Notes under the pieces: generated by a model | Database searches by the model: none | What the model saw: only the letters and a program-made list of their open reading frames with translations | Told to the model about the DNA's origin: nothing | Assembly: GCF_001194135.2 (NCBI RefSeq) | Contig: NC_068981.1 | Coordinates: 3,172,331-3,236,330, forward strand | From: Octopus bimaculoides | Lineage: Eukaryota | DNA length: 64,000 nucleotides | Reading direction: 5' to 3' | Position numbers and translations under genes: made by a program | Part shown: piece after piece, positions 30,479 through 56,678 of the stretch | Layout of the letters: every line of letters begins with the position of its first letter | How positions within the stretch are numbered: the first letter of the stretch is position 1

Positions 30479-30509
30479 ATGGATATAAGGAAAAGAAAGA
30501 ATGATGCAT
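30479..30509 (+). CDS. Gene 2 probable first coding exon MDIRKRKNDA (exon likely starts 30446 or 30469)
   Basis: TTCCATTTCAG acceptor ending 30445; ATG 30479; GTAAGT donor at 30510; phase 1 joins exon 37298 in frame (t+tt = Phe). Short, so chance is not excluded. Confidence 0.55.
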
Positions 30510-31904
30510 GTAAGTAAAATGATAACCAGGCTTATTGCTACAGATTTAACCTATATATATGGGATATATATTTAAAATATGTTCTCGATTATTTTTGAAA
30601 CAATTCCTACAGAAATTTAAATAATGTGGAACTGAATCAACATTTTAAATACTTACAACTTTAACTGAGAGAGAGAGAGCAAAACCGTATGTGATCAGAA
30701 AGTACATATACAGTTTCTACTAGATAGTAATTCTCTCAATAATAGTAAAGATAGCAGAAATAATAATTATCTGATCCATTTAAATTTAGCACTTTCATTT
30801 GATGGAGTTTCCTTGACTAATAATGACATATTATATACCAAGTTTGAGGAGTTGCTGTGTTGTACATGGCTTTTACTTTAAAAAAAAAAAAAGAAAGAAA
30901 AAATCTTCATGCTATCGGTTCTTATTGAAGATTATTAGTCTTTAAGATGGGCACATCATCATTACTTTTAATGTCTAGTTTTCCATGCTTGCATGGGTTG
31001 GACAGAATTTGTTGAGGCAGATTTTGTATGGTCACCTGTTTTCAAAAAAGGTAATATTTTCCCATAGCCAGACATGTTTTCACAGAAAGTTGAAAACAAA
31101 GGATATTGCTTGCATGATGGTGATACTCATTTACAACTATCACATACACACAATTTTCATCTATCAAATTCACTCACAAGGCTTTGTGGCCAGAAGACAG
31201 GAACACATTCTCTTCCTCTCTCTCACATGCACACACATGACTGGTTTCTTCCAATTTTCCTTTACCAGATCAACTCACAAGGCTTTGGTTGACACAGGGC
31301 TGTAGAGGAAGACATTTGCCCGAGGTGCCACACAGTGGGGCTGAACTCTGAACCATGTGGTTGTGCAGCAACATGTTTATTTAATAAAACGTCTTTATAA
31401 AATATTTGTTTGTCTTTTCCCTTCTAATGTTAAAAGGAATATCATTCTTTTCATTTCCAGATATAGGCTCTATTTCTATAAGTTAAGAACATTCTATTTG
31501 GATTCCTAAAAGAATCTTCTATTTTGTTTGTCATAAGACTGCAGCCATGCTGGGGCACTGCCTTGAAGGGTTTAGTGGAGCAAACTGAATTAACCCTGTA
31601 CATTTTTTTCCTTTTTTAAGCCTGGTACTTATTCTCATGGCCTTTTTTGCTGAACCACTAAGTTATGAGGACATAAACAAACCAGCACTGGTTATGTGGG
31701 TGGGGATCAAACGACAACACACACAGATATACAACGGGCTTCTTTCTGTGTTTGGCCCAGAAGACACTTGCCCAAGGTAGCATGTAGTGGAACTGAACCC
31801 AGAACTATGTGGTTGGAAAGCAAACTTCTTACCACACAACTACATCTGTAAATAAAATATCGTTTTAAATGAATTCGATATGAAATTTAGTGATGCTAGG
31901 TGTA

Positions 31905-32280
31905 ATCTTTAGTGGTACTCCATTGGTTACGATAACGAGGGTTCCAGTTGATCCGATCAACGGAACAACCTGCGCATGAAATTAACGTGCAAGTGGCTGA
32001 GCACTCCACAGACATGTGTACTCTTAATGTAGTTCTCAGAGATTCAGTGTAACACAGTGTGATAAGGCTGGCCCTTTGAAATACAGACACAACAGAAACA
32101 GGAAGAAAGAGTGAAAGAAAGTTGTGGTGAAAGAGTACAGCGGGGTTTGCCACCATCTCCTGCTGGAGCCTTGTGGAGCTTTAGGTGTTTTCATTCAATA
32201 AACACTAACAACGCAATCGAAACTGATCTTATGACCTCGAGTCCGCTGCCCTAACTACTGGGCCATTGCACCTCCACAGG
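31905..32280 (-). mobile_element. tRNA-derived SINE family C
   Basis: The reverse complement starts GTGGAGGTGCAATGGCCCAGTAGTTAGGGCAGCGGACTCG (A-box-like) with a degenerate B box. Confidence 0.65.
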
Positions 32281-33355
32281 AGGTGTAATGGTACACTTAT
32301 AAATGATATTATTAGTTAAAAGAATAAAATTAAATGGGCATTATCTGGAAGTATTACAATTCTAGCTGTAGCTGGTAATGTTATTGGGTAAAATTTAGTC
32401 AAGTTAGAAATAGCAATGTTACATGCAAAGTTAGGGGTAATAGTTTGCTGAAGCCTTGTGATTGACTAGTTCGCTTCTCAGCTACATAGCTTCAAGTTTT
32501 GCCCCATTGCAAGTGTCTTCTTCTATAGCCCTGGGGTGACTAATGACTTACCAGGGAATTTGGTAGATGAAAACTGAAAGAAGCCCATTGAATATATCTG
32601 TGTATATGTCTGTGTGTATGTGTGAATGCTTACAATCTGTACTGAGTTGCTGCTACAAACAGTGGCATCCTCATTTATAGCTGGGCTACAACTGGTTACC
32701 TTTTGACATTTTCTGCACTTTCAAATTCATCTAAAATAATAAAAATTCCCTATTTAAAAAACAGGCAAGGCTTGGCACTCGGAAAAGCATCTGGCTTTAA
32801 AAACTGTCCTGCAACTACCACCCCCACCAAGACATGCTAGCATGGCAAAGCTTGTTAAAAGTACAAATGGTGTGTGTGGGTGTGTATGAATGTATGTATG
32901 TGTGTGTGTATATATACATTAATCCCTTGCCGTATTGCGATTCATCTACCGCGGCTTATTATTTAAGTTTATGTCAATTCCTGCATGCTGTTTTGCATTT
33001 ATAATAAAATATATACAAATATACAGTGCAGCACTATTTCTTCTTCAGATTTTCACCTATCACGGGGCGTTTTGGAATGTAACACCCACGATAGTTGAGG
33101 GATTACTGTGTGTGTGTATATATGTATACACATATATAATATCATTGTGGGTCAGATGGAAATCGTAGAGGTAGATTTTACATGTCCAGATGCCCTTCTT
33201 GTCACCAGCCTTCACTTGTTTCCGAGCAAGGTAAAATTTCACTATTGCAAACACTACCTGTATGACTGTGTTGCTTGTTTACACTTACCATCCAATGTGA
33301 TGACAAGTCCCACACAGGTAACCAGACGCATTTATAGGTACATAGACATGTGTAT

Positions 33356-33413
<58 letters not shown>

Positions 33414-34533
33414 GTGTGTGTGTGTATGTATGAGATAGTATAGATATATAATGGCTATAGGGAAATATATCCACTCATAAGTTTTTGGTCAGCCCAAAGC
33501 AACAGTAGGTGACACTTGCCTAACATGTTACTCATGGCTGGGAAGCAAAATTCTTAACCATACAGCCATGTTCGTGTTTGTATGTGTGGAGTGGGTGGGT
33601 AGGTGAGTCCTTTAATCCTGAAAATACCACAAAGGTGGTGAGCTAACAGAATTGTTAGTATGCACAGCAAAATGCTTGGCAGCATTTTGTTTGCCTTTAT
33701 TTTCTGAGTTCAAATTCTGTGAAGGTCGACTTTGCCTGTCCATTCCTTTCAGGGTTGATAAAATAAATACCATTTGATCACTGGGGTCGATGTAATCGAC
33801 TTACCCTCTCCCCCAAAATTGCTGGCTTTATGCTAAAATCTGAAAGCAATATTGAAAATACCTATTATCTAAACATTAATATAATCTAATAATAATAATA
33901 ATAATCTAAACACGAATTAGTGGCCAGTGTCTAAAGTGTATGGGACTGTGTTGGATTGTTTATGTCAAATGTATGAAAATGCTAAATGCTAAAAAAAAAT
34001 GCACAAATGAAATCATAAAGAAGAAAACAAGTAACAGGAAAATTAAAGAAGCTGTAGCATTTGTGCTTGTAGAATTTTAATATAAATTCAGGAGAAAGAC
34101 AGAGACTTAATCTTATATTTATATATTACTAGACTTAAAAATGAAACTGTTATATATATATATATATATATTACTAGATTTAAAGTCGGTAAAAATAATG
34201 GGAAATATTCATTTTGTTCATGACAACATTAATAGCATAAACGAACAGAATTGTTTGTAATTAGAAACTGAAACAGAATTATGGCCTTTTTACTTGCGCC
34301 CTACATCAGAATAAACAACCGAGAAAATAATGAGTTAAATAACTTATTAAATTGATTTTTTTTTAATACTTTTTTGTTATCCCGATCAAACATTTTGGAT
34401 TATAGTTAGAAATTAACTTCTGATTATGACAAGGCTCACAGCTAAAAAAAATACAAGAAAGATCACTTTGTACTTTTTGTCATTAAGTAGTCTCCCCTGC
34501 TGTCAATCAAAATCCATAGCTAAGCTGGCAGTA

Positions 34534-55066: not shown

Positions 55067-55151
55067 ATAATATGTTTGATGATATGGATTTAACAGATTC
55101 CCAGATCTGTGTTTCTGAGCTGTCAGATAATGAACAATTCTCTGATAAAGG
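55067..55151 (+). CDS. Gene 2 exon (D)NMFDDMDLTDSQICVSELSDNEQFSDK(G)
   Basis: TTATTACAG acceptor ending 55066; GG|GTAATG donor at 55152; phase 1 in matches the large exon, phase 2 out matches the next. Confidence 0.82.
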
Positions 55152-56191
55152 GTAATGGAATTTTATTAACATTTATGAATATTTGTGAATATTAAAGATC
55201 TGTGAAAGAGGATTATATTGAGATGTGTGCTACATTTATAACCTTTCCCGTGTACTCTTTCATATACCTTTTTAATATTTAAGCTAATACTTTATTTAAT
55301 TGTAAAGATGTATTCACCATTAAATTCTAATTTAACCATCAATAAATTCAATTTGATTTAATTGCTTTATATAACTTCATATGAAACAACCCCAGTCTAC
55401 ACTGTAGTTATCAAAAACTTATTCAATAATAGATTTAAACTGTCATCCAGTTAAACACCACTGTTTACAACTTTATACTGTTCTCTCCAACCACATTTTA
55501 CATTGATCATTCCACTGAACTACCAAATTATCTCTCCTTCTCCACCACTATATGCCTCTCAATCTCTATATCTGTTACACTATGCCTGCTTTTCTTCCCC
55601 ACGACCAACATTTTGGCAACCTATCTAACCACGTCATCTCCCTCTCTCATCTTTCTTCTGTTTACTATACCAACATTACTATTCTGCTACTCTTCACTCC
55701 CATGGATCATTGGACAAACCCCACCCCATCTACCATTCATTACATCCATCCCTCAACATATATTCTTCATTCATTAGGTTCACACATCTCTTGCCTATTC
55801 CCCATCTCTCACTCTCTCTCTCTTGCAACCTCTACCCACCCACGCTTTTGGTTTCTCTGTCCTCACTCATTGCTATTCACCTCACAATTTCAGGGTTCAT
55901 GCAGACACCTCATCACTATTATTCACATTTCTTCTAATATCTAAGTAACCAAGTTGCTCACTTACCTACAGCAATAAATGTCTTCTACTCTGGTTTTTTC
56001 CCCCCATACTTTAATCCCTCATCTCCTAGCATAAAGGCCTCCCACCAAATCTGGGGGGGTTGTAGTCTTTGGATTTATACAGTTTCCATTTCTACTCCTC
56101 TGTGTGGAACCCTCACACAAGGCCACCTGATGTACCTGCCTTTCCATTTTTCTTTATCCTTATTGTATCTGACATGCAGAAATTTATGCTA

Positions 56192-56422
56192 CGGCGAGCT
56201 GGCAGAAACGTTAACATGCCGGGTGAAATGCTCAGTGGTATTTCGTCTGCCGTTACGTTCTGAGTTCAAATTCCGCCGAGGTCGACTTTTCCTTTCATCT
56301 TTTTGGGGTCGATAAATTAAGTACCAGTTACGCACTGGGATCAATGTAATTGACTTAATCCCTTTGTCTGTCCTTGTTTTCCCCCTCTATGTTTAGCCCC
56401 TTGTGGGCAATAAAGAAATTAG
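56192..56422 (+). mobile_element. tRNA-derived SINE family B, near-intact and CpG-retaining copy
   Basis: GGCGAGCTGGCAGAAACGTT...GAGTTCAAATTCCGCCGAGGTCGACTTT..CTTTCATC...GGGGTCGATAAATTAAGTACCAG...AATAAAGAAAT. Copies near 8680-8900 (-), 8915-9090 (+), 9150-9370 (-), 23230-23430 (+), 33630-33850 (+). Confidence 0.8.
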
Positions 56423-56597
56423 AAATTTATACTACTTGCTTTCTAGAACCTCAATCCTCTGGAAACTTCTCTGCTCACATTTTACCTACAAATATCGGCT
56501 TTACTGATGTTAAACTTATTATTTATAATTTTCTTCTAAATTAATGATTACAATATTTTCATTTTGAAATAAGAAACAAATTATTTTTATTTCACAG

Positions 56598-56678
56598 AAA
56601 CCTATTCCTGCAACCACAGATTGAAAATGATGGAACCAAAATAGTAAAAGATTTAATTAAAGAACTTGTTCAGTTGAA
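56598..56678 (+). CDS. Gene 2 exon NLFLQPQIENDGTKIVKDLIKELVQL(N/K); resembles the BRME1/C19orf57 C-terminal helix
   Basis: TTTTATTTCACAG acceptor ending 56597; AA|GTAAGT donor at 56679; phase 2 in and out. Similarity to BRME1 (as recalled, [19 protein letters not shown]) is from memory only, so no symbol is assigned. Confidence 0.8.

Follow-up and report, generated by a model that had tools for sequence, protein, structure and literature searches.

The stretch of DNA analysed here, referred to as the window, comprises 64,000 nucleotides of the Octopus bimaculoides genome (assembly GCF_001194135.2, contig NC_068981.1, positions 3,172,331 to 3,236,330 of the forward strand). It is AT-rich (36.9% G+C), contains five N gaps and is plainly eukaryotic. 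A first-pass annotation, made from the sequence alone, had described within it a candidate gene related to BRME1 (C19orf57/MEIOK21), the partner of HSF2BP/MEILB2 in a complex with BRCA2. The elements of this candidate gene are the following, where a slash marks an exon boundary:

30479-30509, + strand: candidate first coding exon of 31 nt, ATG GAT ATA AGG AAA AGA AAG AAT GAT GCA T/GTAAGT
48900-51797, + strand: large exon of 2.9 kb, acceptor ttctgtccag/A, donor CATACGAAAG/GTAAAT
48900-50324, + strand: part of the large exon before the assembly gap, 474 codons, low-complexity and acidic, running into a 9-aa repeat
50033-50324 and 50564-50800, + strand: 27-bp tandem repeat array detected with Tandem Repeats Finder, unit (C)QAEAPATR
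50325-50563, no strand: assembly gap of 239 N in the window sequence, interrupting the repeat array
50564-51797, + strand: part of the large exon after the gap, 411 codons plus 1 nt, donor in phase 1
55067-55151, + strand: DSQ-motif exon of 85 nt, ttattacag/AT AAT ATG ... GAT AAA GG/gtaatg, entered in phase 1 and left in phase 2
56598-56678, + strand: helix exon of 81 nt, tttcacag/A AAC CTA ... CAG TTG AA/gtaagt, entered in phase 2 and left in phase 2

The large exon dominates the gene, and its acceptor requires 2 nt from the preceding exon (phase 2). At the base composition of the window a stop codon is expected once per 15 codons, and the probability of encountering none is approximately 8e-15 over the 474 codons that precede the gap and 1e-12 over the 411 codons that follow it. 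With values of the order of 1e-14 and 1e-12, neither half of this open reading frame (ORF) can be attributed to chance. Downstream, the single nucleotide left over by the large exon is completed to a codon by 2 nt of the motif exon, and at the next junction the last 2 nt of the motif exon combine with 1 nt of the helix exon. The motif exon encodes the peptide (D)NMFDDMDLTDSQICVSELSDNEQFSDK(G) and the helix exon the peptide (G)NLFLQPQIENDGTKIVKDLIKELVQL, followed by AA/gtaagt, giving a spliced product that ends in AFHTK-D-NMFDDMDLTDSQICVSELSDNEQFSDK-G-NLFLQPQIENDGTKIVKDLIKELVQL-(N/K). The helix segment itself corresponds to NDGTKIVKDLIKELVQL plus the two bases AA, a split codon that, as AA+Y, would yield the near-invariant Asn of the family. 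It is amphipathic and takes the form D-x-T-x-[IL]-V-x-x-L-I-[KR]-E-L-x-x-L-(N), and DLTDSQICVSELSDNEQ sits 29 residues ahead of its D-G-T. The exons, with their reading frame and splice sites, are real. The peptides quoted in the first-pass annotation lie on the + strand where it had placed them, and DLTDSQI followed by the helix was found in that order near the C-terminus, in the exons at 55067-55151 and 56598-56678.

Excluding the gap, the partial protein comprises 941 residues, among which acidic residues (D+E, 144) outnumber basic ones (K+R, 104), with an isoelectric point (pI) of 5.1. The octopus protein is at least approximately 950 residues long, acidic and mostly disordered. Its lineage-specific repeat array (50033-50800) contains at least 19 copies of the 9-residue unit, each carrying one Cys, and degenerate copies such as HQAEPSTAK and HQTEAPTAE occur upstream of it; the vertebrate BRME1 sequences that were examined showed no array comparable to CQAEAPATR. 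The assembly gap falls within this array and, with 239 N as written, offsets the reading frame of the repeat unit by +1. Register analysis revealed that the repeat is found on both sides of the gap, with no change of orientation, and that it breaks off at unit position 16 and resumes at position 21; therefore, an array that remains in frame needs 4+27n bases (220, 247, and so on). Since the length of 239 N is merely an estimate, the gap is better regarded as a collapsed repeat than as a break in the gene, and the large exon is plausibly continuous across it, with the number of repeats hidden. Regarding the question that the gap had raised about this exon, an in-register join is compatible with the estimated length, and continuity falls short of proof.

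The relationship with BRME1 was addressed with sequence profiles. A profile built from six mammalian C-termini, run in an exhaustive search of 1.84 billion representative proteins, retrieved 155 proteins at E<=1e-3, with the helix located C-terminally in all of the best 150. Ten of the most divergent matches were traced, and all belonged to jawed vertebrates (echidna, gar, sturgeon, zebra shark, characins, frog, newt and teleosts); the remainder of the best 150 of these 155 matches look vertebrate by sequence. The consensus over 139 BRME1 sequences reads D...DSQL......E......EDAT..VCGLI.ELS.LNRL.M.THR.LE..RR. A [LF]D..[ST]DSQ[LI] motif followed by an acidic stretch is present in 102 of these 139 vertebrate sequences, separated from the helix by approximately 27 residues in fishes and 60-75 in mammals, compared with 29 in octopus, and D-G-T in place of D-A-T also occurs in a few vertebrates.

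Hidden Markov models (HMMs) were then generated from 63 (short-spacing) and 102 (all) jawed-vertebrate BRME1 C-termini. A check of this kind, suggested in the first-pass annotation, turned out positive once fish, shark and amphibian sequences were included: the spliced 69-residue octopus peptide scored 19.6 and 21.7 bits with the 63- and 102-sequence models, respectively (per-sequence E-values of 4e-8 and 9e-9), in an alignment that runs from DLTDSQI to ELVQLN as a single block. Omission of the assumed terminal Asn lowered the scores to 16.5 and 18.5 bits, the helix exon alone reached 15.4 and 16.0 bits, and the motif exon alone remained below 4 bits. None of 200,000 composition-preserving shuffles attained the observed scores, their maxima being 18.8 and 17.2 bits, which indicates that the analytic E-values of HMMER are somewhat optimistic. 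A comparison with hhalign also aligned the region from DSQ through L-N as one block, with a probability of 85.9% and P = 5.2e-6. Moreover, translation of the window in six frames gave 2,766 segments, of which the unspliced helix exon scored highest (10.8 and 11.5 bits; runners-up, 7.3 and 6.5 bits). Taken by itself, the sequence match over the aligned block appears good but not overwhelming. In other searches, Flotillin was the sole Pfam match for a 943-aa model of the protein or its C-terminus and was discarded as below threshold, and a PDB sequence search with the octopus C-terminus gave no match.

A second line of evidence comes from the positions of introns. BRME1 exons were mapped in five vertebrate loci, those of a bat, a vole, the zebra shark, a sturgeon and a characin. 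Each of them shows a helix exon with a phase-2 acceptor, as in octopus, and with a phase-2 donor that splits the Asn codon of the sequence L-N-R (for instance, CTG AA/gtaaga in bat and ATC AA/gtaagt in shark). The octopus helix exon ends TTG AA/gtaagt, exactly at the aligned Asn codon, and the last exon of the vertebrate genes opens with Y+CGN, encoding R-L/V-I-M. The exon measures 81 nt in octopus versus 90-96 nt in vertebrates. Within the 34-residue helix, an intron would coincide exactly in position and phase by chance in approximately 1 of 100 cases, independently of residue similarity. The correspondence extends upstream, the DSQ motif of shark, sturgeon, characin and octopus being encoded by an exon of its own whose donor is in phase 2. 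The shark motif exon is entered in phase 1 through a split GAT (Asp) codon, as is the octopus one, and the phases of the last three introns (1, 2, 2) are identical in the two species. Three rodent ORFs from raw assemblies end in GLVVELSSLK and a stop codon, where octopus reads ELVQLK and a stop codon; the rodent ORFs end in this manner because an exon ending AA/gtaa has been read through. The gene structure agrees with the BRME1 assignment and backs it independently of residue similarity.

Some further features of the vertebrate loci were recorded. In bat and vole, BRME1 is followed 3-5 kb downstream by a nanos-type zinc-finger gene (PF05741), which lies on the other strand (bat, 13104-15760; vole, 14890-15405). 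The bat BRME1 helix exon (locus positions 9965-10056) carries a 1-nt frame offset, comprising 92 rather than 93 nt, which places GIKPCEAT and MEDATDT in different frames and accounts for the deposited bat annotation being a mere 68-aa hypothetical protein. In the zebra shark (locus positions 27500-27630) the DSQ motif, elsewhere almost invariant, is degenerate (VMDLSQLNAPQEDNAN...), yet its exon and phases are retained; the octopus form DMDLTDSQI resembles the shark form as well as the teleost ones.

The 5' end of the gene is represented by the candidate exon 1, which reads MDIRKRKNDA plus 1 nt and has a phase-1 donor; the terminal F of MDIRKRKNDAF, as it had been read originally, was not reproduced. 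Among the six short ORFs in 48.9 kb of the + strand that match M-x(1-3)-[KR]3, this is the sole one with a GTAAGT donor. The first coding exons of vertebrate BRME1 genes are likewise short, basic and in phase 1, such as MNKRKKSFSVAT in shark (37 nt), MSKRKRQQSA in sturgeon (31 nt) and MKRKGQST in characin, and the start M-x-KRKK is found family-wide. The octopus candidate shares both length and phase with the sturgeon exon (31 nt, phase 1). A weaker alternative donor located after position 30514 (TAA/GTAAAA), in phase 2, would join the large exon directly and give MDIRKRKNDACK-NPESIF.

The helix is the segment for which structural information on the family exists. The human BRME1 helix sequence that the first-pass annotation had given is correct, as verified against PDB 8a51_B; its mouse counterpart is PDB 7z8z_B. 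In the four-helix bundle formed by MEILB2 and BRME1, the buried a positions are V548, L555 and I562 of the mouse protein (PMC11297322). Octopus has V at the position of mouse V548 and L at those of L551, L555 and L558, of which L551 and L558 are d positions, and the octopus helix also keeps E554, the D-x-T cap and, as AA+Y, a possible Asn at position 559; the equivalent of I562 falls in the last exon, beyond the helix exon at 56598-56678. Eighteen of the approximately 34 helix residues are available, aligned with human E602-N619. In the crystallised bundle of HSF2BP/MEILB2 helix alpha1 and BRME1 (PDB 8A51, 7Z8Z), it is the N-terminal half of the BRME1 peptide that the octopus helix matches, with the heptad register preserved.

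Altogether, the nearest known systems are the BRME1 genes of jawed vertebrates and, in layout, those of fishes and sharks. The octopus gene shares with them a short, basic, phase-1 (candidate) first exon and a giant exon encoding an acidic disordered region, which is followed by small C-terminal exons: a DSQ[IL]-acidic exon ending in phase 2 and then, 27-29 residues on, the D-x-T..V..LI.EL..L-N helix. The pI of 5.1 in octopus lies within the range of 4.4-5.3 in vertebrate BRME1. On the other hand, the phases at the two ends of the large exon are 2 (acceptor) and 1 (donor) in octopus, versus 0 and 0 in shark and sturgeon, and, unlike vertebrate BRME1, the octopus protein is below Pfam detection, carries the CQAEAPATR array and lacks the SQNS.G.FVP.FAKP motif. 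BRME1 homology, as indicated by a modest but significant profile match together with several independent matches in intron position, is probable. We therefore propose, with a probability of roughly 78%, that the window holds most of a gene encoding a BRME1 (PF15710) orthologue that has diverged strongly. The BRME1-like interpretation advanced in the first-pass annotation is supported both by the profile match (19.6/21.7 bits; hhalign P = 5.2e-6) and by the shared intron positions.

Several results weigh against this proposal. Some concern the completeness of the gene. The five exons had been described as phase-consistent, and this holds for the junctions of the large exon with the motif exon (1 to 1) and of the motif exon with the helix exon (2 to 2) but not for the connection of exon 1 with the large exon, since the strong donor of the former is in phase 1 and the acceptor of the latter needs phase 2, which are incompatible. 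A scan for a single bridging exon leading from phase 1 to phase 2 gave implausible candidates, hydrophobic or derived from repeats. Likewise, between 56679 and 64000 no candidate with an acceptor and matching phase resembled the human continuation of the last exon (NR..M..HR.LE), and a last-exon HMM found no match in the 7.3 kb of this region that are readable.

Other results concern the similarity to the family. The Pfam library used includes PF15710 (Brme1; gathering score, 27 bits), to which the human and mouse BRME1 helices score 80-82 bits; no match to it was obtained at E<=10 with the 943-aa model or with C-terminal peptides. When the 354-aa C-terminal part of the octopus protein served as the query of a word-indexed search, 5.8 billion proteins yielded no relative at E<=1. 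A mammal-only profile did not discriminate the helix exon (7.1 bits) from the next-best segment of the window (6.6 bits). The shuffle-based P of the jawed-vertebrate profile match is approximately 1e-6 to 1e-5, which on its own is borderline at whole-proteome scale, the aligned block covers only about 46 residues, and three of the seven near-invariant helix columns contained in the octopus exon differ (A609 to G, G615 to D and S621 to V). Finally, an HMM of the N-terminal motif SQNS.G[KR]FVP.FAKP[RK]K found no occurrence on the + strand of the window. This motif is present in 32 of the 139 family members (in tetrapods, sharks and gar, most teleosts being without it), and because of this low frequency it is not strictly defining.

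The missing Pfam match, the equivocal mammal-only profile, the short block with its three replaced residues and the 17-19 bits attained by the best shuffled peptides would all be expected if the octopus gene encoded an unrelated, lineage-specific disordered protein, whose helix and SQ motif resemble those of BRME1 by chance or convergence; short coiled-coil heptads and acidic SQ motifs are indeed common. We consider this explanation unlikely, since chance would have to account not only for a score that none of 200,000 shuffles reached and an hhalign P of 5e-6, but also for the agreement with five vertebrates in both the phase of an intron and the aligned codon that it interrupts (about 1 in 100). 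It would, moreover, have to produce the phase-2 acceptor of the helix exon, the phase-2 donor of the motif exon, a spacing of 29 versus approximately 27 residues, a C-terminal placement behind a giant acidic exon and a first exon that matches that of sturgeon in length and phase. That the locus is instead a BRME1-derived pseudogene or an assembly chimera, in which no single functional transcript unites the large exon with the two small ones, is very improbable: a gap with a frame offset as written inside the large exon, an exon 1 whose phase does not fit, a last exon not found in the readable part of 56679-64000 and the lack of any matching protein or transcript-derived ORF in the 5.8-billion protein index (E<=1) point in that direction, but both halves of the large exon are open (474 and 411 codons), the flanks of the gap are in register with one repeat array, the 3' junctions are canonical with compatible phases, and the conserved residues are intact.

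Within the proposed BRME1 orthologue, the last exon may reside in the 479-N gap at 57396-57874, or else beyond position 64000. This gap begins and ends 0.7-1.2 kb 3' of the helix exon, a distance comparable to the last intron of the vertebrate genes. A (CA)n microsatellite (57250-57395 and 57875-57990) adjoins the 479-N gap, a plausible site of the last exon.

The remaining features of the window are repetitive. A broken non-LTR (long terminal repeat) retrotransposon remnant occupies 45192-46759 on the minus strand, between the candidate exon 1 and the large exon. Its ORF at 45192-45500 matched the reverse transcriptase family RVT_1 with 28.5 bits (E = 1.5e-6), just under the Pfam cut-off, and the overlapping ORFs next to it had no Pfam match. 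Interspersed repeats resembling short interspersed nuclear elements (SINEs), of approximately 170-220 bp, in both orientations and with 76-88% identity, are present in at least 12 copies in the 64 kb:

2046-2220, 3790-4007, 5592-5769, 6585-6761, 11646-11823 and 14428-14596, both orientations in the family: SINE-like repeats
15784-16007, 21401-21602, 35220-35394, 43329-43507, 52271-52490 and 59545-59765, both orientations in the family: further copies of the SINE-like repeats

Several of the ORFs listed for the window are translations of these repeats, and Rfam and tRNA scans of the window, SINE-like repeats included, were empty.

By analogy with the mammalian proteins, we infer partner binding, a meiotic role and a corresponding expression for the octopus gene. 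Once completed by the last exon, the octopus helix would pack on helix alpha1 of an HSF2BP/MEILB2 orthologue, presumably in a parallel 2:2 four-helix bundle as in the solved mouse and human complexes. Such a bundle would tie the octopus protein to BRCA2 at meiotic double-strand breaks, where the tethered protein may help the loading of RAD51/DMC1. A search for HSF2BP was uninformative regarding a mollusc partner, the top 120 of its 464 matches being all from amniotes.

To our knowledge, BRME1 has been studied in mouse and human only and has been described so far only in vertebrates. The literature consulted yielded no statement on the phylogenetic range of BRME1 or HSF2BP in invertebrates or molluscs. 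If the assignment is correct, Pfam-based standard annotation would overlook the octopus gene, and the case illustrates that orthology between disordered proteins that evolve fast can still be recognised from the introns that they share. The comparison would also define the constrained residues of the helix, namely the D-x-T cap, the a/d core, E554 and N559, with G615 and S621 being tolerant of change. It would single out the conserved yet unstudied DSQ[IL]-acidic motif, and both this motif and the M-x-KRKK start would represent functionally constrained elements. We lean towards the view that BRME1 is not a vertebrate invention and that the BRCA2-HSF2BP-BRME1 module dates back to at least the common ancestor of protostomes and deuterostomes, in which case the intron that splits the helix and the uncharacterised DSQ[IL]-acidic motif would be equally old. 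As a bona fide invertebrate orthologue, the octopus gene would indicate that the HSF2BP-BRME1 arm of BRCA2 meiotic regulation is ancient.

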